Shown here in pieces: positions 3,401 through 50,557 of a stretch of 64,000 bases of DNA; the stretch's first letter is position 1; each line of letters opens with the position of its first letter. The notes under the pieces were generated by a model that did not search any database, had not been told where the DNA came from, and was given only the letters and a program-made list of their open reading frames with translations. The stretch comes from Heterodontus francisci. Taxonomy: Eukaryota. A program made the translations under genes and the position numbers. The stretch lies in assembly GCF_036365525.1 (NCBI RefSeq), contig NC_090387.1:89383691-89447690 (forward strand), read 5' to 3'.

Positions 3401-6400
3401 TGCCCGACTGTCATCAAATAGAGACGGGTGAGGGGGGTGGGGGGGTGTTGGGGGAGAGGGTCCTCAAAGGTCTAAACCGAGGTTCCCCTCTTAGGCCCAG
3501 CGTCAGGACCGTTGCCGTTTCCACGAAATTCAGCGCTCAGACTTTTGGGTGCTTTATTGAAAAATCTCCTCTGTGATTTAACGCCATTCTGGTAATGAAC
3601 ATAAAAATTTATGCTGTGTCCATGCGATTTTTCAATCAGACTCTCACTATTTCACTGGTATTTGAACAATCTTGCTCCTATTGTCAAATGTGATCAGAAA
3701 CCAAGCAATTCTGAACAACAAATGTGATATCTAGGTCATATAATTTACATTGAATCTACCAGATGTATCTTTCTAAGCCGAGTAAATGTTAAAGATAAAG
3801 TCTTAAACTTCATTCATTACCAGGAGGGAAGAACGATGGTGAAAGATCCAACTCTCCCGAACAGCAGGTAGGTTTTCATAATTCGTACTAATGTATTTCA
3901 AATGTAAATATAAATGTAACAATGTTGTACTGTATTTAATGCAATAATTTGCGCGTTTCATTTCCTACTGTACAAATTCAGACAAAATAGCACAGGTTGA
4001 ATTCAGTGCTTATGCAACAGACAATCTCCTATAAGCACATAACCAGTAAAGGACTGGTAAAAAGGACGAGTGGGGTCGATTAGGGTCCTAAAAGGGAATT
4101 TACGCATGGAAGCAGAGGGCATCCCTGAGGTACGAAATGTGTACTTTGCATCGGTCTTTAGCGAGGAAGAAGATGCTGCCAAAGTCAGAGTGAAAGGGAG
4201 GTAGTTGAGACACTGGATGGGCTAAAATGGACAAAGAGGAAGTATAGATCAATTGGCTGTAATTAAAGTTGATAAGTCATCAGGTCGGGATGAGATGCAT
4301 CCAATGATATGTAAGGATAGAAATTGCAGATGCATTGGCTATAATCTTCTAATCCTCCTTCGATATAGTTGTGGTGCCAGGGGACTGGAGAATAGGAAAT
4401 GTTACACTATCGTTCAAAAATGTATGTCAGGACAAGTCCAGCAACTGCAGGCCAGTGCAACTTCGGCAGCAGGAATGCTTTTAGAAACGATGATTCAGGG
4501 CAAAATTAATAGTGACTTAGACAAATGTGGAGTAAGTAAGGAAAGTCAGCACGGATTTGTTAAGGGCAAAGCGTGTATAGCTAACTTGGCTGAGGTTTTG
4601 TTTTTGATAAGGTAACAGGCAAGGTTGATGAGGGTAATGCCACTGACGTGCTGTACATGGACTTCCAAAAGGCCTTTGATATAGTGCCACATAACAGGCT
4701 TGTCAAGAAAGTTAGATCCATGGAATAAATGGGACAGTAGCAACATGGATACGAAAATAGCTGAGTGACAGAAAGCAGAGAATAGCGGTGAACAGTTTTT
4801 TTTGGACTGGAGAAAGACTGGATTCCCAGGGGTTGGTGTTGGGACCTCTGCTTTTCTTGACACATATTACAGAGTTAGACCTGGTTGTACAAGACACAAT
4901 TTCAAAATTTTCGGTGTCACAAAACATGGAAGCATTGTGAACTGTGAGGAGGATAGTGATAAACTTCAAGAGGACACAGGCAAACTGATGGAATGGGTGG
5001 ACAAGTGGCAGATAAAATTAAATGCAGAAATTGTGAAGTGATTTGTTTTGGTAGGAAGAACGAGGGAAGACAATATAAATTAAATGTTACAATTCTAAAA
5101 TGGGTGCAGGCTCAGAGGAACCTGGGGGTGCAAGCACAAATCATGGAAGTTGCAGGGCAGGTTGAGAAATCGGTTAATAAATCATATGAGATCCTGGGCT
5201 TCATAAATAGGGGCATAGAGTACAAACACAAGGAAGTTATGATAAACCTGTATAAAACACTGGTGCGGCATCAACTGAAGTAAAGTGTCAAGTTCTGGGC
5301 ACGACACTTTCGGAAGGATATGAAGGCATTGGAGATGGTGCAGAAAAATCACGAGAATGGTTCCGGGGTGAGGAACTTCAGTTACGTAGATCAGATAAAG
5401 AAGCTGGGTCTGTTCTCTGGGAGAAGAGAAGACGAAGAGGAAATTTGATATAGGAGTTTAAACTCATGAGGCGTCTGGACAGAATAGATAAGGAGAAACT
5501 GTTCCCGTTGGCTGAAGATCAAGAATCAGAGGACACCGATTTAAGGCGATTGGCAGAAAAAAACGCAAAAGTGACAGCGAGTGGTTCGGAGTTGGAATGT
5601 ACTGCCCGGGGGTGTGGTGGTGGCTGATTCAGTTGAGGCCTTCAGAAGAAAGCTGCATAACCATCTGAAGAGAAACAAGAAGTGCAGGGTTACATGGAAA
5701 AGGCAGGGAAGCAGGGATAGGTGAGCTGCCCTTGCAGAGATCCGTCACGGACACGATGGGCCGAATGACCTACTCTGTGCTGTAGCCATTCTATGATTCC
5801 ACGATTCGATATGGAAACAATCTTTCTCAATAGATTCGAGGCACGTGAATTATAACTGTCATTTGCTGACTTATCATCCACTGTAATGAATAGTCGCAAA
5901 ACATTGCTTTAACCTCCTGGATACAATAAGATACAGGGGAGGTACCAGAGGATTCGATAGTGGCAAATGTGACATTCTTATTCAAGAAAGGTGGAAGGAC
6001 AGTCCTAGCAACTACAGGCCAGTTAATTTAACATCAGTGCTGGTTAAAGTTTTAGAAAAATATCAACGGACACTTAGAGAGGTTCGAATTACTTAAGGAT
6101 AGCCAGCATGGATTTGTAAAAGGGAGATCATGCTTGACTATTCCAGTTGTATTTTTTGATGAAAAAACAGAGAAGGTTGATGAAGGGAATGGGATGGAAG
6201 TTATTTATATGGATTTTAAGAAAGTACGTGATAAAGTGCCACATAAAAGGCTGGTAAACAAAATTGAGGCTCGTGGAATAGGAGGTTCAGTGTACAATTG
6301 GATAATAGAAATTAGCTTAAAGGCAAAAACGGTGAGTTGTATTAAATAGTTGCTTTTCGTACTGGGAGATGCTAGACAGTGATGTTCCCCAAGGTCCTGT

Positions 6401-9400
6401 GATGGGACCACTGTTTATTGCTATATAGAAATGACTTGGATCTTGGAATACAGAGTAGAATCTCAAAATTGCTGATGGCACCAAACGTGGAGAAGCAGCA
6501 AACAGTGAGCATGACATGAATCACCTACAACCGGATGTAGATGGACTAGAGAAGTAGGCAGAAAGGTGTCAGATGGAACTTAATACTGCCAAGCAAGAGG
6601 TGATGCATTTTGGCAGAAGGAATAGGGAAAGGTAATATATGCTTAACAGCACAGTTCTAAAGAGTGTGCAGGAACTGAGGAACTGGGGGTGCATGTGCAT
6701 GGATCTATGAAGGTGGCAGGACATGTTGAGAGAGTGGTTGGTAAAGCATATTGAATTTTGGGAGTTCATAAATAGAGGCATTGAGTGCAAAAGCAGAGAT
6801 ATTATGTGGAACCTTTCTCAAGCTCTGGTTAGGCCCAACTGCAGTGCTGTGTCCAGTTCTGGTTACCACACTTCAGTAAGGACGTGAAAGTTCTTGAGAT
6901 GGTGCAGAGGAGATCTACCGGAATGGTTCCAGGGATGGGAGATTTTAATTACAAGGATAGGTTTGGAAAATCTGGATTTGAACCCCTTAGAACAAAGGAG
7001 ATTGAGGAGAGATTTAATAAAAGTGTACAGGATTATCACAAGCCTTATATAAGTTCTAGATGAGCACTTAAAACGCCACAGCATACAAGGCTACGGGGAA
7101 AATGGGAGTAGAATGGTTAGGTGCTTGATGGCTGGCACGGACACCATGGCCGAAGGGCCGGTTTCTGTGCTGTATAACTCTGTGACTATATGACTCTCTC
7201 AGTTAGACAAGGAAAATATTGTTCCCATTACAAATGGTACAAGGACTAGGAGAAACAAATTGAAAATATTGGGCAAGAGATGCAGGGAGAATATGAGGAA
7301 ACAACTTTTTTATGCAGCGGGTGCTGAGGACCGGGAACTCGCTGCCCACAAGAGAGGTGGAAGTGGAGACAATCAATGACTTCAAGAGGAAGTTGGATGG
7401 CCACTAGAAGGAAATGGACTTGTAGGGTACTGAGATCGAGCCCCCTGCAGTGGGACTGATGCATAGCTCCGTTGAGCGCCGGCATGGACTCTATGGACCG
7501 AATGGCCTCCTTCTGTGCCGTAAATGACTCGATGACTCGATGGCTATCCAATGTCCATTTGCCAAATCTGACTAAATCCAGTACATAAGAGTTCAAATCC
7601 TGCCATAGTAATTTGATATTTTCAATTCAGTTTTCAAAAATCTACAAGCAAAATGTGGTAACAGCCAAAGTGACCATGAATTTGTCGTGTTCCCCTGAAA
7701 CCCCAACTGGTTCAATAATATCTGTCAGAGAAGGGCATCTGTCATCCTTAACCGCTCTGTCCGTTACTCCAGTCCACATCAACGTGGTTGACTCTTAACC
7801 TTCATCTGAAGTCTCCTGACATGCCCACCATCACCTTTTAAGGGCAGGCAGGGATAAACAATAAGTGCCGGCCTTGCCAGCGATGCCCACAGCTCTAGAA
7901 TTAATACAAAATCCTGCAGAATGTCACGAGCTGAAGATACAAGTTTTGCTATTTATTGTTCATGCGTGTGCACAGACCACGGAAGCGGAACTTCGGATGC
8001 ATTTGCTGTAATGTGAAAAAAAAAGAGGAGACAGGTGACAAGAAATCAGCATTCTTTTCAGTGGCCTCATTGGCATATCAGATTATCATTGGGTGGAATT
8101 TGTTTCTTCGCTGCACAGGCTGCGAGGACGAGCACGCACTGAGAACCTTCTCGGAAAATTGTGCGTTATTGTCCTCCATTTCCCGTAGATTGAAATCAAT
8201 GGACAGAAATGTGTTGGCATTTACTCGAGGTTTTCCCACATATACCGTCTGCTGCATGAAATTATGGATGCCGAGAAGCGAACAAAAGCTCCAACACATC
8301 AAGAGAGGCATTCCAACCATAGCTGAATCTTTCAGCAAATCTTTTCCCTTAGATATGTCTGTTATTTATTTTCCATTTGTATTACGAGTTCTAATTCTTC
8401 TCCACATTTAAGTCGTCAAAGTCTACCTGACACTGAAAGAAAGAGGTGGATATAGATATAGATGGAAAATATATAGATATATAATTGCATACATATTGTA
8501 TAGATATAATTTTTTTTGATATTCTGGATGAATTAAAGACTGAACGTAGTATTCTAAGTGTAGCGCAGAGGTGACTGCCAACTTCAAATAATCTCCTGTG
8601 TTCCACGTTCTAATAATTGTTTGCAGAATTCTATTCTCTATTTACTTGTTTGAACAATGAAAGTGACCTGACTACAGTTGTCCCAGACTCCCCTCTATCA
8701 CCCTGTGCTAATTCAATTCCATCCATTCTCTAACTGCAACACAGATTTTCCAATTCCGCTCAATTTCATAACAGGATCTAAATGATTTTTCCTATTTTTG
8801 TTGCAACAAATGTGTAGCTTCCAGTATATAAACCTTGACAGCTGCAGGTTATTTCAAGCAGTGAGTCAGGTCAATGGACTGCAGGGATGAACTTTGAGCT
8901 TTCGTTTTTCTTAATATTCTTCACCTGGATATTTCATGGGATTTCCATAACCTCAGTGGAATATTCGCGGAAATCTCAGAGAACCGACTTAAAGAGCGTT
9001 TTCAGCCATTTCCCCCATTTCTCCGGGGTTTCTCGTAATCACGAAGCCAAGTAAGATCAGGAGACGGGTTGTAGCTCTGTCGAGTTTTGAAGACAGATTT
9101 TGGCAAAATACCGCTTGACGTGAAACAACAAATGCATGTGGGGAGCACACAAACATACATCTGGTTGGTAGAATCACACTTCCCAAGGAATTTTCTTTAC
9201 ATTCATTTCAATGGAGGGAAAAGACATCGGGTCCTGTTGCCAGCAGCGCCTTCCCCGGAGTTTCCATTCTGCGCTCAGCGCTAACGTTGCTTAAAGCCGA
9301 GTCGGTAAAGACCAGACCCCCTTTTCACTGTCCCACAAACTGCTTATTTTTGTAAATAAGACTCATTCCGCCTGCTGGGCACTGATGGCGCAGGCAGACA

Positions 9401-10510
9401 CAGGGCAACAGTGACTGATATCGCATCCATTCAGTTAATGGATTGACTATGGAGTTGCAGTTTCCGTCCCTGCTCGCGTCGTTCTGCACACGGAGAGCCC
9501 AACCGAATTTATCTGACAACATAACAAGATATATATGTTTGTCCTTCAGACCATGCAGGGCACAGCCGATGTGATGGCGCCTTATGCTGAACTCGAGATA
9601 ATGAATCCCTTGAAAACTCCAAGACCAAAGCATCAAGAAAGGACAGCGCATGTCCAGGTAGGGGTGAGTAGCCGAACAAAGAGACACGGAATGCCTGTAA
9701 TTAAGAAGTAAAACGGTGAAGCGTAAGAAATGCTTTAATAGTGCTTTTATAGTGCTGTTGTACTTAACATTAATTCTGCCAAGCTTTGGCAATGGTCGTT
9801 ATGTCAGCTATAGCTCAGCTGGTCGCAACTTGACATCTAATTCACAAGGTTGTGGGTTCATCGTCGCATCCTGGAGAGTTGAGCACAAAATATTCGTTGA
9901 CATTCCTGTGCAGTACTGAGGGAAATCTACTTTGTTGGGGGTGCCGTCTGTCGAATGAGACCTTGGACTGAGGCCTCGGTTTCTTTGTTAGGCGAATCCC
10001 TTGACACTATTTCGAAGAAAAGCAGGGAGTTATCCCTAGTGTCCGAGTCAATAATTATTCTTCAATCAACATCACCAGAACAGATTATCTGCTGACTAAC
10101 ATACTGTCCGCGGGAGCTTGCTGTGAGAAAATCGGCAGCCATGTTTCCTACAGTACAACAGTTACTGCACTTCAAAAACTATTTCTTTGGCTGTTAAAAT
10201 GCTTTGGGGGTGTCTTGAGGTCGCGAAAGGCGTTATATAAATGCAAGTTTTTTCATTGTTTTTCAATTTGAATTCCAGAGCCTAACTTTACATTGCCGTT
10301 AACATATCGAACTAATTATATTCCCAAATATTGATTTCACAGACCAAGCAAAGGACACCTGATAATAAGCTGACTTACGCTGCTGTATCTATGGCAGGGT
10401 CAAAGAAAACAGCAAAGCCTAATTATAAGGATAAGAGCACGGAGTATGCTCAGCTACGGATTGAAAAACAAAGAGCAGACGTGATTTACACCGAACCGAA
10501 AGCCACGTGA
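117..10510 (+). CDS. Copy A of the same receptor, 5'-partial (leader and V exons presumably upstream of the window); exons 117-428, 2463-2573, 3824-3867, 9550-9663, 10343-10510
   Basis: Exon sizes (312, 111, 44, 114, 168), splice sites and phases identical to copy B; open frame to TGA at 10508-10510. Confidence 0.88.
445..1820 (-). mobile_element. Old CR1 LINE fragment (mirror copy ~47570-48665, +)
   Basis: Degenerate QLDYCAQCWAPHF / LGLLSLKHRKLKG RT C-terminal motifs. Confidence 0.75.
1240..1540 (+). mobile_element. tRNA-derived V-SINE (HE1-like), left arm only
   Basis: A/B boxes (tggcgcagtgg, gttcaattcc), V-domain gtggagtttgca.gttctccc, CR1-like tail and (ctaaa)n; TSD attcg 1235-1239/1541-1545; empty site in right arm ~47860. 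Confidence 0.85.
1885..2350 (-). mobile_element. Deu-domain SINE (mirror copy ~47095-47525)
   Basis: Deu core (actgagggaatgctgcact...gaagagcaggg...tatccctcaa) with L2-like tail. Confidence 0.75.
2463..2573 (+). CDS. Copy A transmembrane exon GGENNCYLLVSASAGGVVVLLVIGLIIAKRCVAKKNN
   Basis: ctttcag| acceptor, g|gtaaga donor, 111 bp, hydrophobic helix. Confidence 0.9.
2801..3537. mobile_element. GC-rich non-autonomous DNA transposon/MITE (mirror copy ~45875-46638)
   Basis: Abrupt GC-rich block in an AT-rich intron; imperfect terminal inverted repeats (ggggtggatttc / ggcctgaatttc); no coding capacity. Confidence 0.5.
3824..3867 (+). CDS. Copy A short cytoplasmic exon GGKNDGERSNSPEQQ
   Basis: cattaccag| and cag|gtaggt, 44 bp, phase 1-0. 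Confidence 0.8.
4000..5800 (+). mobile_element. CR1 LINE ORF2 remnant (mirror ~43270-45080)
   Basis: DKSSGRDEMHP, SQHGFVKGK, YMDFQKAFD, LGFINRGIEYK motifs; frameshifted. Confidence 0.85.
5910..7540 (+). mobile_element. CR1 LINE remnant(s) (mirror ~41990-43170 lacks ~0.75 kb)
   Basis: YMDFKKVRDKVPHKRL motif; CR1 3' ends with (tgactc)-like tails at ~7190 and ~7535. Confidence 0.8.
9550..9663 (+). CDS. Copy A cytoplasmic repeat-1 exon (APYAEL)
   Basis: tgtccttcag|acc, ggg|gtgagt; phase 0-0; appears identical to the copy B exon. Confidence 0.72.
9800..10250 (+). mobile_element. Deu-domain SINE (mirror ~37580-38185)
   Basis: tRNA-like head, Deu core, tail aaaggcgttatataaatgcaag. Confidence 0.75.
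10343..10510 (+). CDS. Copy A terminal exon with LTYAAV, TEYAQL and VIYTEP tyrosine motifs
   Basis: ttcacag|acc; 55 codons then TGA. Confidence 0.88.
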   Translation, partial: TKQRTPDNKLTYAAVSMAGSKKTAKPNYKDKSTEYAQLRIEKQRADVIYTEPKAT

Positions 10511-37320: not shown

Positions 37321-37488
37321 TCACGTGGCTTTCGGTTCGGTGGAAATCACGTCTGCTCTTTGTTTTTCAATCCGTAGCTGAGCATACTCCGTGCTCTTAT
37401 CCTTATAATTAGGCTTTGATGTTTTCTTTGACCCTGCCATAGATACAGCAGCGTAAGTCAGCTTATTATCAGGTGTCCTTTGCTTGGT
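37321..37488 (-). CDS. Copy B terminal exon with ITIM LTYAAV and ITSM-like TEYAQL
   Basis: ttcacag| acceptor, phase 0; TKQRTPDNKLTYAAVSMAGSKKTSKPNYKDKSTEYAQLRIEKQRADVISTEPKAT*. Confidence 0.88.
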   Translation of the reverse strand, partial: TKQRTPDNKLTYAAVSMAGSKKTSKPNYKDKSTEYAQLRIEKQRADVISTEPKAT

Positions 37489-40400
37489 CTGTGAAATCAA
37501 TATTTGGGAATATAATTAGTTCGATATGTTAACGGCAATGTAAAGTTAGGCGCTGTAATTGAAATAGAAAAACAATGAAAAAGCTTGCATTTATATAACG
37601 CCTTTCGCGACCTCAATACATCCCAAAGCATTTTAACAGCCAAAGAAATAGTTTTTGAAGTGCAGTAACTGTTGTACTGTAGGAAACGTGCCTGCCGATT
37701 TTCTCACAGCAAGCTCCCGCGGACAGTATGTTAGTCAGCAGATAATCTGTTTTCGTGATGTTGATTGAAGGATAAAGATTGACTCGGACACTAGGGATAA
37801 CTCCCTAATAATAATATCCGAAGAAGGGTCACTGACCCGAAACGTTAACTCTGCTTCTCTTTTCACAGATGCTGCCAGACCTGCTGAGTGGTTCCAGCAT
37901 TTCTTGTTTTTATTTCAGATTTCCAGCATCCGCAGTATTTTGCTTTTATTTTAGGGATAACTCCCTGCTTTTCTTCGTAATAATGTCACGGGATTCACCT
38001 TAGAAAGAAACCGAGGCCACAGTCCAAGGTCTCATTCGAAAGACGGCACCCCCAACAGAGCAGATTTCCCTCAGGACTGCACTGGAATGTATATTTTGTG
38101 CTCAACTCTCTGGAGTGCGACGATGAACCCACAACCTTGTGAGTTCGATGACAGGTTGCTACCAACTGAGCTACAGCTGACATAACGACCATTGCCAAAG
38201 CTTGGCAGAATTAATGTTAAGTACAACAGCACTATAAAAGCACTATTAAGGCATTTCTTACACTTCACCGTTTTACTTGTTAATTACAGGCATTCCGTGT
38301 CTCTTTGTTCGGCTACTCACCCCTACCTGGACATGCGCTGTCCTTTCTTGATGCTTTGGTCTTGGAGTTTTCAAGGGATTCATTATCTCGAGTTCAGCAT
38401 AAGGCGCCATCACATCGGCTGTGCCCTGCATGGTCTGAAGGACAAACATATATATCTTGTTATGTTGTCAGATAAATTCGGTTGGGCTCTCCGTGTGCAG
38501 AACGACGCGAGCAGGGACGGAAACTGCAACTCCATAGTCAATCCATTAACTGAATGGATGCGATATCAGTCACTGTTGCCCTGTGTCTGCCTGCGCCATC
38601 AGTGCCCAGCAGGCGGAATGAGTCTTATTTACAAAAATAAGCAGTTTGTGGGACAGTGAAAAGGGGGTCTGGTCTTTACCGACTCGGCTTTAAGCAACGT
38701 TAGCGCTGAGCGCAGAATGGAAACTCCGGGGAAGGCGCTGCTGGCAACAGGACCCGATGTCTTTTCCCTCCATTGAAATGAATGTAAAGAAAATTCCTTG
38801 GGAAGTGTGATTCTACCAACCAGATGTATGTTTGTGTGCTCCCCACATGCATTTGTTGTTTCACGTCAAGCGGTATTTTGCGAAAATCTGTCTTCAAAAC
38901 TCGACAGAGCTGCAACCCGTCTCCTGATCTTACTTAACTTCATGATTACGAGAAACCCCGGAGAAATGGGGGAAATGGCTGAAAACGCTCTTTCAGTCGG
39001 TTCTCTGCAAGTTTCGCGAATATTCCACTGAGGTTATGGAAATCCCGTTAAATTTCCAGGTGAAGTATATTAAGAAAAACGAAAGATCAAAGTTCATCCC
39101 TGCAGTCCATTGACCTGACTCACTACTTGAAAAAACCTGCAGCTGTCAAGGTTTATATACTGGAAGCTACACATTTGTTGCAGCAAAAATAGGAAAAACC
39201 ATTTAGATCCTGTTATGAAATTGAGCGGAATTGGAAAATCTGCGTTGCAATTATAGAATGGATGGAATTGAATTAGCACAGGGTGACAGAGGAGAGTCTG
39301 GGACAACTGTAGTCAGGTCACTTTCATTGTTCAAACAAGTAAATAGAGAATAGAATTCTGCAAACAATTATTAGAACGTGGAACACAAGAGATTACTTGA
39401 AGTTGGCAGTCACCTCTGCGCTACACTTAGAATACTACGTTCAGTCTTTAATTCATCCATAAAATATATATCTACATCTATACAATATGTATGCAATTAT
39501 CTTTCTATATATTTTCCATCTATATCTATATCCACCTCTTTCTTTCACTGTAAGGTAGACTTTGACGACTTAAATGTGGAGAAGAATTAGAACCCGGGAT
39601 ACAAATAGAAAACAAATGTCAAACATATCTAAGGGAAAAGATTTGCTGAAAGATTCAGCTATGGTTGGAATGCCTCTCTTGATGTGCTGGAGTTTTTGTT
39701 CGCTTCTCGGCATCCATAATTTCATGCAGCAGACGGTATATGTAGGAAAACCTCGAGTTAATGCCAACACATTTCTGTCCATTGATTTCAATCTATGTGA
39801 AATGGAGGACAATAACGCACCCAAGTCTCCTGGCCCTGATGGAATGCATCCCAGGGTACTAAAAGAGATGGCGGGAGAAATAGCAGGTGAACTGGCGGTA
39901 ATTTTCCAAAATTCGCTGGACTCTGGGGTAGTCCCAGCAGATTGGAAAACAGCAGATGTGATGCCACTGTTTAAAAAGGGAGGTAGACAAAAGATGGGGA
40001 ATTATAGACCGGTTAGCTCAACCTCTGTAGTGGGGAAGATGCTTGAGTCTATTATCAAGGAAGAAATAGCAGGGCATCTCGATAGAAATTGTCCCGTTGG
40101 GCAGACGCAGCATGGGTTCATGAAGGGCAGGTCATGCTTGACAAATCTTTTGGTATTCTATGAAGACATTACGAGCAAGGTGGACAATGGGGCCCCAGTG
40201 GATGTGGTGTACCTAGATTTCCAAAAGGCCTTCGACAAGGTGCCGCACAAGAGGCTGCTGCATAAGATAAGGATGCATGGCGTTAGGGGTAAAGTATTAG
40301 CATGGATAGAGGATTGGTTGACTAACAGGAAGCAGAGAGTGGGGATAAATGAGTGCTATTCTGGGTGGCAATCAGTCACTAGTGATGTGCCTCAGGGATC

Positions 40401-43400
40401 GGTGTTGGGACCGCAATTATTTACAATTTAATATAGATGATTTGGAGTTGGGGACCACGTGTAGGGTGTCAAAGTTTGCAGATGACACTAAGATGAGTGG
40501 CAGAGCAAAGTGTGCAGATGACTGTGAAACTTTGCAGGGGAACATAGATACATTGAGTGAGTGGGCAAAGGTCTGGCACATGGAATACAATGTTAATAAA
40601 TGTGAAGTCATTCATTTCGGTAGGAGTAACAGTAAAAAGGATTATTACTTGAATGGTAAAAAGTTGCAGCATGCTGCTATGCAGAGGGACCTGGGTGTCC
40701 TTGTGCATGAATCGCAGAAGGTTGGTCTGCAGGTACAGCAAGTAATTAGGAAGGCAAATGGAATTTTGTCCTTCATTGCTAAAGGGATTGAGTTTAAAAG
40801 CAGAGAGGTTATGTTGCAGCTGTACAAGGTACTGGTGAGGCTGCACCTGGAGTACTGTGTGGAGTTTTGGTCTCCTTACTTGAGAAAGGATGTCCTGGCA
40901 CTGGAGGGGGTGCAGAGGAGGTTCACTAGGTTGATTCCGGAGTTGAGGGGGTTGGCTTATGAGGAGAGACTGAGTAGATTGGGATTATATTCATTGGAAT
41001 TCAGAAGAATGAGGGGGGATCTTACAGAAACATATAAAATTATGAAGGGAATAGATAAGATGCAAGTAGAGAGGATGTTTCCACTGGCAGGTGAAGCTAG
41101 GACAAGAATGCATAGACTCAAGATTAGAGGGAGCAGATTTAGGACTGAATTAAGAAGGAACTTCTTCACCCAGAGGGTTGTTAATCTATGGAATTCCTTG
41201 CCGAGTGAAGTAGTTGACGCTACTTCAGTAAACGTTTTTAAAGCTAAGGTAGATATCTTTTTGAACAATAAAGGAATTAAGGGATACGGTGAGAGAGCGG
41301 GTAAGTGGATCTGAGTCCACGAAAAGATCAGCCATGATCTTATTGAATGGCGGAGCGGGCTCGAGGGGCCGGACGGCCTACTCCTGCTCCTACTTCTTAT
41401 GTTCTTATGTTCCGATAAGGTTCTCAGTGCTTGCTCGGCCTCGCAGCCTGTGCAGCAAAGAAACAAATTCCACCCAAAGATAATCTGATATGCCAATGAG
41501 GCGACTGAAAAGAATGCCGATTTCTTGTCACCTGTCTCCTCGTGTTTTTTTTTCACATTACAGCAAATGCATCCGAAGTTCCGCTTCCGTGGTCTGTGCA
41601 CACGCGTGAACAATAAATAGTAAAACTTGCATCTTCAGCTCGTGACATTCTGCAGGAGTTTGTATTAATTCTGCAGCTGTGGGCATCGCTGGCAAGGCCG
41701 GTACTTATTGTTTATCCCTGGTTGCCCTTAAAAGGTGATGGTGGGCTTGTCAGGAGATTTCAGATGAAAGTTAAGAGCCAACCACGTTGATGTGGACTGG
41801 ATTCACGGACAGAGCGGTTGAGGATGACAGATGCCCTTCTATGACGAACATTATTAAACCAGTTGGGGTTTCAGGGGAACACGACAAATTCATGGTCACT
41901 TTGGCTATTACCATATTTTGCTTACAGATTTTTGAAAACTGAATTGAAAATGTCAAATTACCGGATTTGGCAAATGGACATTAGACAGCCATAGTCATTG
42001 AATCATTTACGGCACGAAAGGAGGCCATTCAGTCCATAGAGTCCATGCCGGCGCTCCACGGAGCTATGCATCACTCCTACTCCCCGGCTCTATCTCAGTA
42101 CCCTACAAGTCCATTTCCTTCAAGTGGCCATCCAACTTCCCCTTGAAGTCATTGATTGTCTCCACTTCCACCACACTTGTGGGCAGCGAGTTCCAAGTCC
42201 TTAGCACCCGCTGCAGAAAAATAAGTTGTTTCCTCATATCCCGGGGCGGCACAGTTGTTAGCACCACAGCCTTACAGTTCCTGCGACCTATGTTCAATTC
42301 TCGGTACTGCCTGTGCGGAGTTTACAAGTTGTCCCTGTGTCTGTGGGTTTCCACCGCGTGCTCTGGTTTCCTCCCACCTCCAAAAACTTGCAGGTTGATA
42401 GATAAATTGGCCATTGTAAATTGCCTCTAGTGTCGGTAGGTGGTAGGAGAATGGTGCGGATGTGGTAGAGGATATGGGGTTAATGTAGGATTAGCATAAA
42501 TGGGTGGTTGTTGGTCAGCACAGACTTGGTGGGCCGAAGGGCCTGTTTCATTGCTGTATCTCTAAATAAATAAAATTCCCTCTGTGTCGCCTAGTCCTTG
42601 TACCATTTGTAATGGGAACAATTTTGTCTAACTGAGAGAGTCATAGAGTCACTGAGTTATCCAGCACAGAAACATGCCCTTCGGCTCATGGTGTCCGTGC
42701 CGGCCATCAAGCACCTAACCATTCTAATCCCATTTTCCCCGTAGCTTTGTATGCTATGGCGTTTCAAGTGCTTATCTATAACTAATCTTAGGCCTGTCAT
42801 AATCTTGTACACTTTTATTAAATCTCTCCTCAACCAGCCTTTTATGGTGGACTTTATCAAGTACTTTCTTAAAATCCATACAAATAACTTCCATCACGTT
42901 CCCTTCATCAACCTTCTCTGTTATTTCATAAAAAAATACAATTAGATTAGTCAAGCATGATCTCCCATGCTAGTTATCCTTCAGTAACTCGAACCTCTCT
43001 AAGTGTCCGTTGATATTTATCCTGATTATTCTTTTTCAAACCTTACCCAGCACTGATGTTAAATTAACTGGCCTGTAGTTGCTGGGACTGTCCTTACACC
43101 CTTTCTTGTCACATTTGCCACTATCGAATCCTCTGGTGCCACCCCTGTATCTTGTTGTCTCCAGGAGGTTAAAGCAGTTTTTTTTTACTATTCATTACAG
43201 TGGATGATCAGTCAGCAAAAGACAGTTATAATTCACGTGCCTCGGATTTATTGAGAAAGATTGTTTCCACATAGAATCATGGAATCATAGAATGGCTACA
43301 GCACAGAGTAGGTCATTCGGCCCATCATGTCTGTGACGCATCACTGCAAGGGCAGCTCACCTAGCCCTGCTTCCCTGCCTTTTCCATGTAACCCTGCACT

Positions 43401-46400
43401 TCTTTGTTTCTCTTCAGATAATTATGCAGCTTTCTTCTGAAGGCCTCAACTGAATCTCCCACCACCACACCCCCGGGCAGTACATTCCAACTCCGAACCA
43501 CTCGCTGTCACTGCGGCTTTTTTTGTGCCAATCGCCTTAAATCGGTGTCCTCTGGTTCTCGATCCTCAGCCAACGGGAACAGTTTCGCCTTACCTACTCT
43601 GTCCAGACGCCTCATGATTTTATACTCCTCTATCAAATTTCCTCTTAGTCTTCTCTTCTGCCAGAGAACAGTCCCAGTTTCTCTATCTGATCTACGTAAC
43701 CGAAATTCCTCACCCCGGAACCATTCTCGTGATTTTTCTGCACCATCTCCAATGCCTTCATATCCTTCCGAATGTGTCATGCCCAGAACTTGACACAATA
43801 CTTCAGTTGATGCCGCACCAGTGTTTTAGACAGGTTTTTCATAACTTCCTTGTGTTTGTACTCTATGCCCCTATTTATGAAGCCCAGGATCTCATATGAT
43901 TTATTAACCTATTTCTCAACCTGCCCTGTAACTTCCATGATTTGTGTTTGCACCCCCAGGTTCCTCCGAGCCTTCACCCATTTTAGAATTGTAACATTTA
44001 ATTTATATTGTCTGCCCTCGTTCTTCCTACCAAAATAAATCACTTCACACTTTCTGCATTAAATTTTATCTGCCATTTGTCCTCCCATTCCATCAGTTTG
44101 CCTGTGTCCTCTTGATGTTTATCACTATCCTCCTCACAGTTCACAATGCTTCCATGTTTTGTGTCACCGAAAATTTTGAAATTGTGCCTTGTACAACCAG
44201 GTCTAACTCTGTAAAATGTGTCAAGAAAAGCAGAGGTCCCAACACCAACCCCTGGGAATCCAGTCTTTCTCCAGTCCAAAAGAAACTGTTCACCGCTATT
44301 CTCTGATGTCTGTCACTCAGCTAATTTCATATCCATGTTGCTACTGTCTCATTTATTCCATGGATCTAACTTTGTTGACAAGTCTGTTATGTGGCACTAT
44401 ATCAATGATCTTTTGGAAGTCCATGTACAACACGTCAGTGGCATTACCCTCATCAACCCTGTCTGTTACCTTATCAAAAACAAAACCTCAGCCAAGTTAG
44501 TTATACACGATTTTTCCTTAACAAATCCGTGCTGCCTTTCCTTACTTACACAACATTTGACCAAATCACTATTAATTTTGCCTTGAATCATTGTTTCTAA
44601 AAGCATTCCTGCTGCCGAAGTTAAACTAACTGGCCTGCAGTTGCTGGACTTATCCTGACATGCATTTTGAACAATAGTGTAACATTTCCTATTCTCCAGT
44701 CCCCTGGCACCACAACTATATCGAAGGAGGATTAGAAGATTATCGCCAATGCATCCGCAATTTCGACCCTTACATATCATTGGATGCATCTCATCCCGAC
44801 CTGATGACTTATCAACTTTAAGTACAGCCAATCGATCTATTACTTCCTCTTTGTCCATTTTAGCCCATCCAGTGTCTCAACTACCTCCCTTTCACTATGA
44901 CTTTGGCAGCATCTTCTTCCACCTTAAAGACCTATGCAAAGTACACATTTTGTACCTCAGGGATGACCTCTGCTTCCACGCGTAAATTCCCTTTTAGGAC
45001 CCTGATCGGCCCCGCTCGTCCTTTTTACCAGTCCTTTACTGGTTATGTGCTTACAGAAGTTTGTCTGTTGCATCAGCACTGAATTCAGCCTGTGCCATTT
45101 TGTCTGAATTTGTGCAGTAGGGAATTAAACGCGCAGATTATTACATTAAATAGAGTACAACATTGTTACATTTATATTTACATTTGAAATACATTAGTAC
45201 GAATTATGAACACCTACCTGCTGTTCAGGAGAGTTGGCTCTTTCACCATCGTTCTTCACTCCTGGTAATGAATGAAGCTTAAGACTTTATCTTTAATATT
45301 TACTCGGCTTAGAAAGACACTTCTGATAGATTCAATGTAAATTATATGACCTAGATATCACATTTGTTGTTCAGAATTGCTTGGTTTCAGATCACATTTG
45401 ACAATCGGACCAAGATTATTCAAATGCCAGTGAAGTAGTGAGTCTGGTTGAAAAATCGCATGGGCACAACACAAATGTTTATGTTCATTACCGCACTGGC
45501 GTTAAGTCACAGGCAATGAAAGGAGATTTTTCAATAGACTACCCATTAAGGGCGGCACAGTGGCGCAGTGGTTAGCACCGCAGCCTCACAGCTCCAACAA
45601 CCCGGGTTCAATTCTGGGTACTGCCTGTGCGGAGTTTGCATGTTCTCCCTGTGACCGGGTGCTCCGGTTTCCTCCCACAGCCAAAGACTTGCAGCCATTG
45701 TAAATTGACCCTAGTGTAGGTAGGTGGTAGTGAATATGGGATTACTGTAGGGTTAGTATAAATAGGTGGTTGTTCTAAGAAAGAAAAAGAAAGAAATATA
45801 AATGGGTGGTTGTTGGTCGGGACAGATTCCGTGGGGCCTGTTTCAGTGCTGTATCTCTAAATAAATAAGTCTGAGGCCTGAATTTCGTGGAAACGGCGGG
45901 GGTCCTGATGCTGGTCAGGAGGGGAACCTTACCTGAGACCTTTGGGGACCTCTTTCCCTCCCCGTCACCAACCCCCACCCCCCCCCCCCCCCCCACCCCC
46001 TCCCGATTCCAGTCAATGACAGTCGGGCAAGTAACTGCCTGGGCTGTGGTTCCGGTCCTTTTCAGAACGAGGATCCCAGCCCAAAGAACTATCAGCCAAT
46101 CAAACGGCCAGCAGCTCAGTGGGAGCGGTGGCCATTGCTGTACGACAAGTGGACGTTCACTGGAGTCCCACACCCCCGTAAAAGTGGCGGAGTCACCAGG
46201 AATAGTCCGGCAGGCCCTGCCGAGGGGGAGGGAGGATGTCGGTTATTGAGGACGAGAGGGGTTGTTCATGGGGTTGTTCATGGTGGCCTTTGCCACCGGG
46301 TGCCCTCTGTGGGCCACAGATCGCCCACAAATGAGACCCCGCCCCCCCCCTCTCCCGTCCCAAGACTGCAGGGAGTCACTTTGTTTAACTGGAATCTTCC

Positions 46401-49400
46401 CACGTCGAGACACCCGACCTGTAGTCGAATACCAGCGGCAATGGGAAGAGGCCCTTAAGTGACTATTAATTGGCCACTTAATGGCCTCAATTAGCCTTTG
46501 GGTAGGATGGCCTTTCGCGTCCCAGAAAAAACGCACGGCAACGGGAAGGTGCAGGGCAGTCCACCCGCTGCCTTCCTTCGATATTTTATGGCCACCGCCT
46601 CCGTTCCAGTCACCAGGGGGCACCTAGAAATCCACCCCGAATCTCTTGTCAGTGACTGAAGACCTTCGAAAACTCTACTCCATTTCAGAAATTTGAATGT
46701 ACCCCTACACTGGAACCCTGGAGTGCCCGTGTAGGGTCCCATATATTTTAAACACCATGAAAACGTTTGTGTTCAGCAATCACCTGTGCTCCTGTGGGGA
46801 CAGGCTAACTAATGTCGCTTTGAAACTTGTGCTAACGTTCGTAAAATAAAACTGAATTATTTCATACCATTGTTTTTCTTTGCCACACATCGCTTGGCAA
46901 TAATGAGACCGATCACCAATAATACCACCACGCCCCCTGCAGATGCAGAAATCAGCAAGTAATGGTTGTTTTCTCCACCTAAAAGATGTAAATTAAATAT
47001 ATAAATCCGAACCTGTATGCTGTTCAATTCAATATGACAATACCCTGAAAGAAAGAGAATTCGAAATATTTTCAGTCAGTTATCGCAGTTGATATCAACC
47101 ATGGCTTAGTTCACTCTTGCCTCTGAGTCATAAGGTTCTGGGTTCAAGTTCTACTTTAGGGCTTGAGCACACAAATTAAGGCTGACACTCCAATGTAGTA
47201 CTGAGGGAATGCTGCACTATTGGAGGTGTTGATTTACAGACGTGATATTGCCTTCTCAAGTGGATATAAAAACGCCCATGGTACTATTTCAAAGAAGAGC
47301 AGGGGAGTTATCCTTGGTGTGCCAACCAATATTTATCCCTCAATCAAAATCACAAAACAACTTATCTGGTCATTATCACATTGCTGTTTGTAGGAACTTG
47401 CTGTGTGCAAATTGGCTATCGCATATTCTACATTACAACAGTGAAAATACTTCAGAAGTACTTCATTGGCTGTAAAGCACTTTGAGATATCCTGTGGTGG
47501 TGAAAATCGTTATATAAATGCATTTATTTTAATCATTTAGTATTAAGGTGCGATATCATTAAACAAAAGAATGTTGAGCTATGACATATTGGATTTAATG
47601 CACCGAGGTACCTTGGGTATGCAATTTGCTAAGTGATAGGTGGCAGAGAGTGGATTTTTTCACAGGAGAGAAATATGCAGTGGGATTCCCTCAGGGATCA
47701 GTATCAGGACTAATAATTTACCTGATATGCATAAATGATCTGGACTTGATATCGGGAGTACAATTTGAAAATTGTTAATTAGGCAAAATTGGTAACGTAG
47801 TAAATGGTGAGAAGGGTAGGAGCAGACATTAGGGGAAAATACAGTGAGGAAATGGGCAGACGAATGGTAAGTGCAATTCAATGTGGATAAGTCTGAAGTG
47901 TGCACTTTGGGTGAAACAACATGGAGAGGTAGTATAATGGAAATGGTGCGATTTTGAGAGGCATACTAAATCAGGAGAAGCTAGGGGTGCATATCTACAC
48001 ATGTTTGAAGGTGGCAGAGCAAGTTAATAAGTAGGGTTAAGGAAAGCTTGTGCGATAATTAGTTTTGTGAATAGAGGTATTGGATACAAAAACATGGAAG
48101 CCATGCGAAAGTTTACACATCTCTGGTTAGTTCTCAGTTAGATTATTGTGCACAATGCTGGGCACCGCATTTTAAAAGAATGTCAAGGTCTTGGACAGAA
48201 TACAGGCGCGATTTACCGGCTTTAACAGGGAGGAGAGCCTTCAGCTACGTTTAGAGATTGGCGAAGTTCGGATTGCTCTCATTAGAACACAGAAAATTAA
48301 GGGGATATCTAAGAGCAGTATTCAAAATTATGAAGGGTTTTAATGAATCAAGTAGGAAGAAACATTCCTCTGAAGAAATGGGTCGATAGCCGGCAGTCAT
48401 AGGTTTAAAACTACTGGCAAAAAGACTAGAGGGGTTTTGAGGGAAATTCGTTTCTCACGGGGGTTGTTGAGATGTCGAATACACGAGCTGAAAGGTTGTT
48501 GGAAGCAATTTATACATGGATTTTCAAAAGGCAATTGGACATGTTACTTGAAGGGGTTTAATCTGCAGAGTTATGGGGATTAAACTGGACAGCTCTTTCA
48601 AAGAGGCCGCACAGACACGCCAGGCCAAATGACCTCTTTCGATATTGTACGATTCTACGATTTTATCTGAAATCTCACCTGTGCTGTGATAGGTGACAGT
48701 GTAAGTGGCCATGGCTGATATTTGGAGGGTACTGTGAGAGACCAGGCAGGAATAAACAGTTCCGGACAGGACAAACTGCGTCTCTTGCAACTGGCTGGAA
48801 GCTTCATATAGTCCGTCGGTGTTAGGTTCAACAACGTTACTTATCCCTGTTGTAGTTTTGTTGCCATCCTTATACCAAGTGAAGCTGATACTCTCTGGAT
48901 AAAAGGGAGATGTCACGCACACAACAGTCAGAGAAACAGATGAATCCTTCTCAGGTTGCTGAGATTTAATTTTCAGTGGAGTTGGCGGAGCTAAAAAAAA
49001 ATGAAGGAAAATAACGTAAATGGGACATCAATCAGGGTTAACAACCGGACATTTTGTTTCAGCCCATTTCAAAGTTAACACTGGAGGAGGTCTCGGGTGG
49101 GTCGGTGGGTGGAGGGGGGTCGGGGCTGGGGGTGGAGGGTGTGGTGAGGGGATGAGTCTTTGTGACACTGCATGGATGTTCACTTTGCGCTGTCAGTAGT
49201 TGCATCGTAAACGGATTTTCACAAGTGTCACCATTATTTCGGCGGTAATTGCAATGTTACCGCCCGGCAAAAAAAGGATGATAGCGAGTGGGTCGCCCGT
49301 TTTACAGCTCTCCCATTTTTCTATTCTAATGGGAAAGAAAATTGAGCGGGATGTATTTTGCGTTGCTCGCCCTGTTTCGCGGTACAGCTGCGAACTCTGT

Positions 49401-50557
49401 TGAACATAAGAACTGATGAGAAAATATAATTTACCAAACTAGAGGGACACTGGTGCCAAGGTCCAGTATGATACCTTATTTACAGGAGGTGAAAATCATG
49501 AAGACAAATGGGACGGGAGGCTGAAGCTACAGAATGTAAAATTTAACTGTTAGTAATATGCCCTTTCAAAGATCCTGACATATAGATTATTAAATTAGAG
49601 CTAGGGAAATCTGAATCCAGATAGAAAGTCAGTCTCGCGTAACGGAGACAAAATAAATCTCAAATAGGGCAATATCTGTGCTCACAGCGGCAGATCCGCG
49701 CTTGTATCTAACACTGTAGAGATATACACCTCCGTAAATGATACTGCAATTTTAACTTCAATAGTTTTCTGTATGCCGTTTACTGTGTATTTTGGGAATC
49801 AAGCAACTAAGAGATAATGCTTGGCTTGATCAATATTGCTGAAATATTCTGAAGCACATCAAAAAATAATTGCAGCCGTCACAGGTGCAATTTGAATGTA
49901 TGCATGCTAAAACAATGGAATTTAATTTGCGATGTGAATCCTTCGAAGCACAATCAATAAATGTTCCGAATTGTGAAATATTACAGTTACAGGGATCTCA
50001 TTCGTTGTTTTTATACTTACCCGTTACAACTAAATTGGATCCCGTTCCGTTTCCAACTATTTTGCCTCGATGAGTGACAGTGCAATAGTATGCTCCTGCG
50101 TCTTGTACACTCACATTGATTATCCAAAGAACGGCTTTGAATCCAGTCTTAACGCTAATTAATTTTCTGTCATCCTGTCCTGTGCTTAGATATTGATTAT
50201 CACCCTCCTTCCACCAGTAGACATTCACAGCTGGGCCGTCTTGAAACATGGGAAGCGTGCAGCGAAAGGAAACATTTCTTCCCGGGTTTGTGCTCGTACT
50301 CTCAGGGTACTGATTCACTTTGACTGAAGTTTCGCCGCAAGCTATCGGAAAAGATGATAATAAGATAGTATTACAGAAGGAAAAGCGCGAGAATAAGGGA
50401 ATCAGGGAATATGTACAAAGGAAAATGAAACATTTTATATCAAAGGAAGGCTAAATAAATGCCAGATTTAACGAGAAATTAAGGTATAGAGGGAACTGTT
50501 ACCTGTAAATATGATCCCCAAAACAGAGAGGCACTGAAGTACAACACTCGCTAACAT
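37321..50557 (-). CDS. Complete VJ-C1-TM-ITIM/ITSM immunoglobulin-superfamily receptor, copy B (SIRP-like tail, NKp30-like V), ~374 aa; exons 50557-50503, 50341-50021, 48990-48679, 46978-46868, 45261-45218, 38434-38321, 37488-37321
   Basis: All introns are GT-AG with compatible phases (1,1,1,1,0,0). The summed CDS of 1125 nt is open from ATG to TGA. Domain motifs are recognisable in each exon. The five exons from C1 onward have identical lengths in the inverted paralog. Confidence 0.88.
37807..37951 (+). mobile_element. Penelope-like 3' terminal fragment with hammerhead motif, right arm only
   Basis: 15-bp TSD tagggataactccct 37792-37806/37952-37966; empty site ~10023-10039; same family as 18535-18652, 58040-58080 and 59375-59507. 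Confidence 0.75.
38321..38434 (-). CDS. Copy B exon 6: cytoplasmic repeat-1 exon TMQGTADVMAPYAELEIMNPLKTPRPKHQERTAHVQVG
   Basis: tgtccttcag| acceptor, ggg|gtgagt donor (alternative in-frame cag|gtaggg 6 nt earlier), phase 0-0, YxxL motif, homologous to the last exon. Confidence 0.72.
39821..41410 (+). mobile_element. Young 5'-truncated CR1, right arm only
   Basis: KSPGPDGMHPR, YLDFQKAFDKVPH, KFADDTK; (ttcttatg)n tail; empty site ~8150-8165. Confidence 0.93.
42241..42575 (+). mobile_element. V-SINE, right arm only
   Basis: Family match, (taaa)n tail; absent at ~7255-7295. Confidence 0.8.
45218..45261 (-). CDS. Copy B exon 5: short cytoplasmic exon GVKNDGERANSPEQQ
   Basis: cattaccag| acceptor, cag|gtaggt donor, 44 bp phase 1-0, conserved in paralog. 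Confidence 0.8.
45549..45866 (+). mobile_element. V-SINE, right arm only
   Basis: ggcggcacagtggcgcagtggttagc head; absent at ~3540. Confidence 0.82.
46868..46978 (-). CDS. Copy B exon 4: transmembrane exon GGENNHYLLISASAGGVVVLLVIGLIIAKRCVAKKNN
   Basis: 111-bp phase 1-1 exon, hydrophobic span followed by basic stop-transfer residues; AG/GT sites. Confidence 0.9.
48679..48990 (-). CDS. Copy B exon 3: C1-set Ig domain
   Basis: [46 protein letters not shown] (C1 hallmarks FYP, WxKDG, NxDGxY, YxCxVxH); 312 bp, phase 1-1. Confidence 0.95.
50021..50341 (-). CDS. Copy B exon 2: V-set Ig domain with germline-joined J-like G strand
   Basis: VKVNQYP..GRNVSFRC..VYWWK..LWIINVSVQDAGAYYC..GNGTGSNLVVT: canonical Cys/Trp/DxGxYYC. 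Acceptor ccgatag|, donor g|gtaagt; 321 bp, phase 1-1. Confidence 0.95.
50503..50557 (-). CDS. Copy B exon 1: signal peptide MLASVVLQCLSVLGIIFT
   Basis: ATG at 50557-50555, hydrophobic 18-aa leader, phase-1 donor ACAG|GTAACA; continues into (A)CG-ETSVKV of the V exon, a typical IgSF leader split. Confidence 0.85.

Follow-up and report, generated by a model that had tools for sequence, protein, structure and literature searches.

The human SIRP alpha cytoplasmic tail carries four tyrosines, arranged as two ITIM-type pairs that recruit SHP-1/2, CD47 is a ligand of the SIRP family, and NKp30 (NCR3) has a V domain of the nonrearranging VJ type whose glycine-rich G strand includes an NGT sequon, like the shark gene described below. 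PRARP, which was described by Fu et al. in J Immunol in 2019, reportedly combines a nonrearranging VJ with one C domain, a transmembrane (TM) segment and a tail, and exists as a gene pair. In the nurse shark, UrIg2 exists as one gene only, shows linkage to the MHC or the AgR complex and has nine C1-type domains; UrIg also has several (PMC12227049). PRARP has been reported as MHC-linked (PMC10751288, which cites Fu et al.), and nonrearranging VJ(-C1) genes are regarded as relics of the pre-RAG antigen-receptor lineage (PMC12227049, PMC10751288). Here we describe a gene in a window of 64,000 nucleotides from the horn shark, Heterodontus francisci, whose product is probably a type I membrane inhibitory receptor, a member of a chondrichthyan SIRP-like paired family with a germline-joined V(J) and one C1.

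Gene structure and transcription

The receptor gene is intact and occupies positions 50557-37321 on the minus strand, with seven exons for a leader, a V domain with built-in J strand, one C1 domain, the TM segment and three cytoplasmic parts. All exons are open with AG/GT borders, those for leader, V, C1 and TM end in phase 1, and 374 codons are obtained when the exons are summed. A RefSeq model from the same species, P0160 (374 aa), matches all seven exons at 100% identity by tblastn. A sequence-only reading of this DNA had proposed just such a complete gene (L/V/C1/TM/three cytoplasmic exons) and a spliced product of 374 amino acids; the former is borne out by the exon borders and the P0160 identity, the latter by the codon sum and the P0160 length. 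The gene has thus been seen before, as a RefSeq model with the automatic name "SIRP alpha-like"; what it lacks is a name in the literature.

The leader exon (50503..50557; all seven are on the minus strand) begins with ATG at 50557-50555 and comprises 18 codons plus one base, ending in phase 1; it matches P0160 residues 1-18 at 100% and is covered by an RNA contig (50574-50503, spliced to 50341) which extends the 5'UTR to at least 50574. The V(J) exon (50021..50341) reads …YYCTVTHRGKIVGNGTGSNLVVT, matches Pfam V-set, Ig_3 and ig, and is covered by RNA with 0 mismatches. Pfam C1-set is found in the third exon (48679..48990) at 1.6e-14, with 58.7 bits in P0160, and RNA joins this exon to V and TM. 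Evidence for the stalk and TM exon (46868..46978) comes from its sequence, an AF2 helix at 230-265, a TM survey and RNA joints 48676/46975 and 46867/45260. Among the cytoplasmic exons, cyt1 (45218..45261; 44 nt, phase 1 to phase 0, GVKNDGERANSPEQQ) has AG/GT borders, an RNA joint and a 100% match to P0160 267-281; cyt2 (38321..38434) carries the first two-tyrosine unit, as judged from its sequence, the P0160 match and the family alignment; and cyt3 (37321..37488), which matches P0160 320-374 at 100%, carries an ITIM and an ITSM (motif scan) and the stop codon at 37323-37321. A LINE lies inside intron 5.

Leader, V, C1 and TM are united in a single spliced RNA contig of 822 nt (run X1; 50574-50503 / 50341-50021 / 48990-48676 / 46975-46867) with 0 mismatches and canonical CT..AC joints, and contigs of runs X2 and X3, which like X1 derive from one sample of one study, splice 46867 to 45260, that is, TM to cyt1. 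RNA depth is confined to exons and repeats, and the RNA apparently comes from two alleles of the receptor gene. The cyt1-cyt2 and cyt2-cyt3 joints are based on the RefSeq model and on encoded peptides conserved in other species. No second C1-like exon was found in the gene by tblastn. Because C1 is spliced directly to TM, the transcript is therefore without a second C1, and an ordinary V-C1-C1 SIRP is ruled out. Spliced transcripts of the gene that had been read from the sequence thus exist, and its single C1 is upheld by them.

The V domain and its J-like G strand form one open exon, and RSS-flanked separate V and J segments of the kind found in IgL/TCR are absent. Neither an exact heptamer nor a heptamer-spacer-nonamer occurs on either strand of 49800-50600, and the two loose RSS matches in the whole window both lie away from the V exon. 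The receptor gene requires no rearrangement. When a lambda chain is aligned by HMM, the J-like strand falls into the register GTGSNLVV (GxG[S]xLxV), with the Asn of the NGT sequon replacing the Phe of FGxG; the V(J) exon with a built-in J strand and no RSS, as described earlier, stands, with its strand register shifted to GTGSNLVV as a small correction. This N-glycan sequon is family-wide and occupies the V-V interface position of Ig/TCR, and the receptor has no stalk or interchain cysteine, features which together argue against pairing of the Ig/TCR type.

The hinge APPTPLKI precedes the C1 exon, whose hallmarks include YSCLVSH, and the AF2 model of the ectodomain is confident, with an Ig V and C1 fold. 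The TM helix, YLLISASAGGVVVLLVIGLIIA, is free of charged residues, and a juxtamembrane KRC comes directly after it. A motif scan of the tail identified the ITIM LTYAAV (Y331) and the ITSM TEYAQL (Y354), 23 residues apart. In cyt2 the two-tyrosine unit is degenerate, as APYAEL (Y293) is without the canonical -2 residue and His315 stands where relatives carry Tyr (ERTVYAQ); thus, in the family alignment, the receptor has one intact pair and one degenerate unit, whereas its relatives retain all four tyrosines. These motifs point to an inhibitory function, and the earlier reading of an inhibitory receptor gains support from the uncharged TM and the ITIM/ITSM tail. The likeness of the tail to SIRP that it described is one of motifs and spacing.

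A chondrichthyan family

The V exon, used as query in an exhaustive HMMER search, returned 111 cluster representatives at E<=1e-10, and the V-C1-type matches whose names were looked up were all from sharks, rays or chimaeras. Judged by these matches, the receptor gene is one copy of a large multigene SIRP-like family, seen only in chondrichthyans among the matches named. Invariant or nearly so among 26 aligned members are YWWK in the C strand, YYC...GNGTGSxLxV, the hinge VPPTPL and, in the C1, FYP...TWYK.G, GLYE.SS and Y.C.VSH, and the receptor gene, as represented by P0160, carries the family hallmarks. In a V-C1 tree of 59 rows, unrooted and with no outgroup, horn-shark sequences form a trio (SH-aLRT 100) nested in a 13-row elasmobranch subfamily (SH-aLRT 100). 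Going by this tree, the receptor gene is without a one-to-one orthologue and is a member of a horn-shark-specific trio; the sequence-only reading had left room for a well-described orthologue of that kind, and it is the trio that was found instead.

Two forms occur in the family: in some members the TM is uncharged and the tail carries ITIM/ITSM motifs, in others the TM contains Arg and the tail is short, and the latter look like activating partners. Automatic database names are inconsistent (SIRPα-, Igλ-, tapasin-, B7H6- and MHC II-like, and also NCR3LG1-like, CD276 homolog and PD-L1-like), the commonest being "SIRP alpha-like". We found no published description of the VJ-C1 family in the literature within our reach. 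The earlier suggestion of a possibly uncharacterised shark-lineage family is consequently sound as regards lineage and literature but not as regards the gene, for which a RefSeq model already exists.

A partial paralogue, gene A, lies at 117..10510 on the plus strand, tail-to-tail with the receptor gene (tblastn, blastn). Its exons for C1 (117-428), TM (2463-2573), cyt1 (3824-3867), cyt2 (9550-9663) and cyt3 (10343-10510) have AG/GT borders and an open frame, and its V exon lies outside the window. Between the two copies in the window the C1 differs by 14 non-synonymous and 4 synonymous changes, a dN/dS of ~1 that fits both relaxed constraint and diversification. The tyrosine of the terminal VIYTEPK of gene A is Ser in the receptor gene.

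Proposed function and alternative readings

If the product acts as its motifs suggest, its V domain would bind a ligand, probably endogenous and conserved, since the horn-shark copies do not vary in their CDR3-like stretch. Once Y331 and Y354 had been phosphorylated by Src-family kinases, SHP-1/SHP-2 would dock on this pair through their tandem SH2 domains and dampen activating signals within the cell, by analogy with SIRP alpha or PD-1. Siblings with Arg in the TM would signal oppositely via an adaptor of the DAP12/FcR-gamma type. The V domain would most likely be monomeric, because of the family-wide NGT glycan at the FGxG Phe position and the lack of a stalk cysteine.

From which lineage might such a receptor have come? 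The nearest known relatives are SIRPα, Igλ and UrIg2, and the comparisons do not separate a SIRP lineage from an Ig/TCR/UrIg-like one. It is possible, although we lean against it, that the family is the shark branch of SIRP proper, co-orthologous to SIRP alpha/beta, with its V being d1 and its C1 being d3; d2 would then be either a later acquisition of bony vertebrates or a chondrichthyan loss. The prevalence of the automatic name "SIRP alpha-like" is in keeping with such a history, as is the ESM Atlas, where the nearest named clusters are SIRP alpha-type (0.97 and 0.96, with 207 and 201 of 256 features common). The family profile scores 109 bits against SIRP alpha 2wng (V+d2 63.9, d3 44.4); d3 is the highest of the isolated C1 domains seen (UrIg2 C domains 26-33, IgG CH 20-27 bits), and the SIRP d2-d3 linker VPPT aligns with the family hinge VPPTP. 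Furthermore, the family tail, with two units of two tyrosines, probably has a spacing like that of the four tyrosines of SIRP alpha, and inhibitory forms are accompanied by Arg-TM forms, as in SIRP alpha/beta. Against this, the shark gene has one C1 rather than two, an Ig lambda stretch (V-end plus C) does as well (65.0 bits), and no bony-vertebrate SIRP was found in three word-based searches or among the 150 listed matches of the exhaustive V-exon search. As UrIg2 V-C1 reaches 60.4 bits, the SIRP likeness is, on these two profile scores, not exclusive.

The Ig lambda and UrIg2 scores can also be read as favoring an independent pre-RAG antigen-receptor relic akin to UrIg/UrIg2 or chicken PRARP, with chains that pair via V and C1 like Ig/TCR. 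The VJ and C1 layout, split leader and phase-1 exons are consistent with a relic, Fab light chains are the top Foldseek matches (E ~1e-16), and the literature views nonrearranging VJ(-C1) genes in this manner (PMC12227049, PMC10751288). We nonetheless consider it quite unlikely: throughout the family the interface Phe of FGxG is replaced by the Asn of the NGT sequon, a stalk cysteine is missing, the single C1, uncharged TM and ITIM tail stand against the many C domains of UrIg2 (PMC12227049), and the family is large and turns over fast rather than being a conserved single gene. The earlier idea that the gene could serve as a proxy for the pre-RAG antigen receptor finds no support in the present results.

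It is very improbable that the protein is a B7-type ligand (B7-H6/B7-H3/PD-L-like, IgV + IgC) rather than a receptor. Several members are auto-named NCR3LG1-like, CD276 homolog or PD-L1-like, CD276 was matched at 3e-10 in the C1 exon search, and B7-H6, B7-H3 and PD-L2 (Z 14.5-15.0) are among the low-rmsd (2.6-4.7 Å) two-domain matches obtained when structures were searched non-redundantly. However, VIA-align puts B7-H6, B7-H3, PD-L2, MHC II and Ig domains level at Z 14-15, and ties B7 structural matches (Z 14.5-15.4) with many Ig families; all values differ by no more than about 1.5, and the angle predicted between the domains is uncertain. The 60 best matches of the profile search include no B7 protein, and a J-like G strand, an ITIM/ITSM pair and Arg-TM siblings are what one expects of receptors. 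Finally, the degenerate first tail unit (His315 for Tyr; APYAEL), the Ser in place of the terminal VIYTEPK tyrosine of gene A, the C1 dN/dS of ~1 and the LINE in intron 5 might suggest that this copy is decaying and has lost most or all of its function, which we find scarcely credible for a gene with seven open exons, canonical splice sites, spliced RNA apparently from two alleles and an intact ITIM and ITSM.

Comparison with known systems

Beyond the inhibitory receptor of a SIRP-like paired family that we favor, a more far-reaching proposal, which must be considered speculative and on balance unlikely, is that the SIRPs have their sister, or their surviving ancestral form, in the chondrichthyan VJ-C1 family. 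A paired inhibitory/activating innate receptor with one V and one C1 would then date back to the earliest jawed vertebrates, and SIRP d3 would be what remains of its C1 and VPPT hinge. If this were true, the family would provide a concrete, expressed and tractable model of the non-rearranging VJ-C1 gene type thought ancestral to antigen receptors, and the SIRP lineage would be tied to the discussion of UrIg and PRARP.

The shark gene shares the V(J)-C1 ectodomain layout of Ig light chains and TCR chains, but it has no RSS, separate J or interchain cysteine, and is germline-encoded and multigene with its own TM and an ITIM/ITSM tail. NKp30 differs from it in lacking a C domain, in its short tail and in the Arg of its TM, whereas the shark gene has a C1 exon and an uncharged TM, which rule out identity with NKp30; the latter was also absent from the top 60 matches of the V exon among solved structures. 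UrIg and UrIg2 are alike in that a nonrearranging single-exon VJ is combined with C1-type domain(s) in elasmobranchs, but the shark gene has one C1, an ITIM tail and a large, dispersed, fast-evolving family, and identity with UrIg/UrIg2 is ruled out by one C1 in a multigene family versus several in a single gene.

In comparison with the SIRP family, the shark gene has one C1 where SIRPs have two that are membrane-proximal (V-C1-C1), its V identity to bony-vertebrate SIRPs is too low to surface in searches, an NGT sequon occupies the FGxG Phe position, and the first tyrosine unit is degenerate. With that family it nevertheless has in common a germline-joined V with a J-like G strand, C1-set domain(s), an uncharged TM, a tail whose tyrosine motifs are paired and predicted to serve SHP-1/2, putatively activating siblings that have a basic residue in the TM and, with SIRP alpha d3 in particular, the VPPT linker and the FYP..L.LTW..NG block.

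Gene structure and expression

The evidence supports a reading of the gene at 50557-37321 (-) as an intact, expressed and putatively inhibitory member of a SIRP-like VJ-C1 paired-receptor family of chondrichthyans. All seven exons of the complete gene proposed by the sequence-only reading were found, with AG/GT borders throughout. On the minus strand these are a leader exon (50557-50503, ATG at 50557-50555, 18 codons plus one base), a V(J) exon (50341-50021) whose 3' end reads ...YYCTVTHRGKIVGNGTGSNLVVT and is followed by a GT donor, a C1 exon (48990-48679) that starts with the hinge APPTPLKI and contains YSCLVSH, a TM exon (46978-46868) encoding the stalk and transmembrane segment, and three cytoplasmic exons, cyt1 (45261-45218, 44 nt), cyt2 (38434-38321), which holds the first tyrosine unit, and cyt3 (37488-37321), which holds the ITIM, the ITSM and the stop. 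Each of the leader, V, C1 and TM exons ends in phase 1. Starting from the V exon, an exhaustive HMMER search led us to the RefSeq model of the gene, P0160 (374 aa, Heterodontus francisci), named [quoted passage not shown]. Because every one of the seven exons is matched by P0160 with 100% identity, the 374-aa protein predicted from the sequence is the NCBI automatic model. This database record was the query in full-length searches, and the exons were used as separate queries.

Pfam assigned the C1 exon to C1-set (1.6e-14) and the V exon to V-set/Ig_3/ig. V and J form one open exon, and a scan of both strands of the V exon region (49800-50600) gave neither a recombination signal sequence (RSS) heptamer nor a heptamer-spacer-nonamer arrangement, in agreement with the earlier claim of a J strand inside the V exon and no RSS. 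There is also no hidden second C1, as tblastn with the C1 exon matched only itself and one paralogous exon at the window start.

Contigs from three RNA runs (X1, X2 and X3) of one sample in one study were compared with window positions 44750-50700, where they cover exons and repeats and leave unique intron sequence bare. An 822-nt X1 contig joins 50574-50503, 50341-50021, 48990-48676 and 46975-46867, from leader through V and C1 to TM, with zero mismatches, and in X2 and X3 contigs 46867 is joined to 45260, the TM-cyt1 joint by which cyt1 is defined; every joint seen in these contigs is canonical (CT..AC in plus-strand terms). For cyt1-cyt2 and cyt2-cyt3, whose joints lie outside the RNA-compared stretch, the basis is the RefSeq model and peptide conservation in other species. 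Spliced transcripts, whose absence had been named as one possible refutation of the gene, thus exist, and since C1 is spliced directly to TM in them, the other possibility, that this is an ordinary SIRP with a second C1, falls.

Seven differences separate the X2 and X3 contigs from the window (50231, 50134-50137, 48840, 48710 and 46911). Five of them are amino-acid changes (A>P, K>S and A>G within V, S>N and M>I within C1), in each case to a residue found in one of the paralogues P0151 and P0161. These variants may come from another allele that is also expressed, or from exchange between copies. Summed RNA contig depth is very high (up to ~6e5) at 45546-45943 and 47138-47535; these peaks are highly expressed or highly repeated intronic elements.

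Receptor features and the second copy

The product is a putative ITIM-bearing IgSF paired receptor, SIRP-like in appearance. Its transmembrane segment, YLLISASAGGVVVLLVIGLIIA, contains no charged residues and its stalk no cysteine. The tail carries APYAEL (Y293), then His315 at the site of a Tyr in relatives (ERTVYAQ), followed by the ITIM LTYAAV (Y331) and the ITSM TEYAQL (Y354), spaced by 23 residues. AlphaFold, run with the family alignment, modelled the ectodomain with confidence as two beta-sandwiches and predicted a helix spanning residues 230-265 and a disordered tail.

An NGT sequon lies at 50037-50045 (-), and its Asn is nearly invariant family-wide. In Ig and TCR the Phe of the FGxG motif sits at the V-V interface. 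HMM alignment to a lambda chain pairs the family's N-G-T-G-S with F-G-T-G-T, and therefore the sequon Asn occupies the position of that Phe. A glycan there, predicted from the sequon, would lie on the V pairing face of Ig/TCR and, because the FGxG Phe forms the V-V interface, would be expected to hinder Ig-type pairing. A homodimer prediction for the ectodomain (residues 21-232) gave no answer (score 0.00) and counts neither for nor against pairing.

A partial paralogue at 117-10510 (+) stands tail-to-tail with the gene. Tblastn and blastn located its C1 (117-428), TM (2463-2573), cyt1 (3824-3867), cyt2 (9550-9663) and cyt3 (10343-10510) exons, all on the plus strand; reading through these exons showed the copy to be intact within the window, its V exon lying off it. 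The Tyr of VIYTEPK is kept in this paralogue and is Ser in the studied gene. Identity between the two copies is 87-92% over their 5' halves, introns included, and 95.4-95.5% over the last ~3.4 kb (8161-11517 versus 39820-36329), rising to 100% across the cyt2 exon and the 12 nt on either side of it. From these identities, the signalling exons look like they are spanned by a gene-conversion tract. Between the two C1 exons dN is 0.062 and dS 0.057 (14 non-synonymous and four synonymous changes). Between cyt1 and cyt2 of the studied gene, the intron contains LINE-type reverse-transcriptase ORFs (39574-41314, +) that are missing from the paralogue, and the insertion is therefore younger than the duplication. 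RT/endonuclease ORFs were also seen at 21041-22831, 60722-62361 and 13088-13633.

A chondrichthyan family

The exhaustive V-exon search in HMMER gave 448 matches at E<=0.001, 111 of them at E<=1e-10. All V-C1-type matches that we looked up came from sharks and rays (Heterodontus, Scyliorhinus, Mustelus, Heptranchias, Hemiscyllium, Chiloscyllium, Cetorhinus, Leucoraja, Amblyraja, Hemitrygon, Hypanus, Mobula, Narcine and Pristis) or from the chimaera Callorhinchus; outside the chondrichthyans, the matches that we looked up belonged to turtles, a snake and teleosts and were multi-Ig proteins. The 150 matches listed for this search comprise only family members and multi-Ig proteins. Homologue searches with P0151, with A1, the profile of 26 family members, and with P0160 (the last at E<=10) matched family members exclusively, and no SIRP, NKp30, PRARP, NITR, TCR or IgL sequence was among them. 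Automatic names within the family are inconsistent, ranging over SIRP alpha-like, SIRP beta-like, Ig lambda-like, tapasin-related-like, NCR3LG1-like, CD276, PD-L1-like, MHC II-like and TCR beta-like.

The alignment of the 26 members has invariant and nearly invariant hallmark columns and a tail built from two units, each with a pair of tyrosines. Long ITIM/ITSM tails accompany uncharged TMs, other members combine an Arg in the TM with a short tail, and some models have no TM. As read from the sequences, this split of tail and TM has the pattern of paired inhibitory and activating receptors. With its one C1, uncharged TM, ITIM/ITSM tail and chondrichthyan-only V-C1 matches looked up, the gene supports the proposal of an inhibitory VJ-C1 receptor of the shark lineage. 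A family-only tree of 59 V-C1 ectodomains places it in a horn-shark trio (SH-aLRT 100), nested in a 13-row elasmobranch subfamily (SH-aLRT 100). The tree also contains several further subfamilies of old origin and expansions within particular lineages; no one-to-one orthologue, a further possible refutation if well described, appears among the 59 rows. The Amblyraja radiata model P0006, in which one C1 domain is directly followed by an almost identical second one, is the sole V-C1-C1 member seen, and this tandem may reflect recent duplication of an exon or an assembly/model artefact.

This VJ-C1 family is apparently undescribed in the literature and present in RefSeq under automatic names; no description was found in the open-access literature (on PRARP, shark/cartilaginous-fish SIRP and ITIM paired receptors), and one may exist elsewhere. 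Outside Ig, TCR, MHC, tapasin, SIRP and B7, a C1-set domain is a rarity. The current debate on antigen-receptor origin draws on non-rearranging VJ-C1 genes (PMC12227049, PMC10751288). UrIg, UrIg2 and NCR3/NKp30 (PMC12227049, PMC10751288) and PRARP (PMC10751288) are counted as non-rearranging VJ genes, and neither PMC12227049 nor PMC10751288 mentions the chondrichthyan family, which is large and expressed and spans sharks, rays and chimaeras. The studied locus alone is a modest gain, contributing a single intact, putatively inhibitory member and the copy that stands tail-to-tail with it; interest in the family would rise if it proved to be a basal SIRP lineage or an antigen-receptor precursor relic.

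Nearest known families

What, then, are the closest relatives of this family? The three top rows of a family-profile search against all solved structures were 2rcj, a chimeric Ig model (125 bits in total, 65.0 for a stretch of lambda V-end and C), 9dmx, shark UrIg2 (124 bits; V-C1 60.4, C domains 26-33), and 2wng, SIRP alpha (109 bits; V plus d2 63.9, d3 44.4). A top PDB match to UrIg2 (74.6 bits) was not taken as a sign of kinship, that score being the sum of three C domains of ~20-27 bits each. For the C1 exon, the highest score over a single stretch (44 bits, residues 135-199) came from PDB 9wyt_A, a 324-aa "Ig-like domain-containing protein".

Structural comparison by Foldseek and VIA-align confirmed the V and C1 folds and did not tell families apart: Fab light chains ranked top in Foldseek, and in a non-redundant structural search B7-H6, B7-H3, PD-L2, MHC II, IgNAR and Ig domains were tied at Z 14-15. 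The tail alone reached at best 0.79-0.81 in the ESM Atlas (C1orf162, LST1), which is chance level, and Pfam gave only SIT matches, all sub-threshold, on the tails of relatives.

In the ESM Atlas P0160 adjoins SIRP alpha clusters (0.97 and 0.96). SIRP alpha d3, at 44.4 bits, has the top score seen for an isolated C1 domain with the family profile; its linker VPPT aligns with the family's VPPTP, and FYPxxLxLTWxxNG lies within the matched stretch. The lambda C part is inseparable from its stretch, and therefore the d3 score leaves kinship unsettled. If the family were a shark branch of SIRP, paired SIRP-type leukocyte regulation would date to the base of the jawed vertebrates and a minimal V-C1 form would be shown to be viable. 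The defining layout of SIRP is V-C1-C1, and the studied gene, with V-C1, departs from it. Given these sequence, structure and tail comparisons, we use "SIRP-like" to describe the family's looks and probable mode of action, with no claim of proven SIRP membership.
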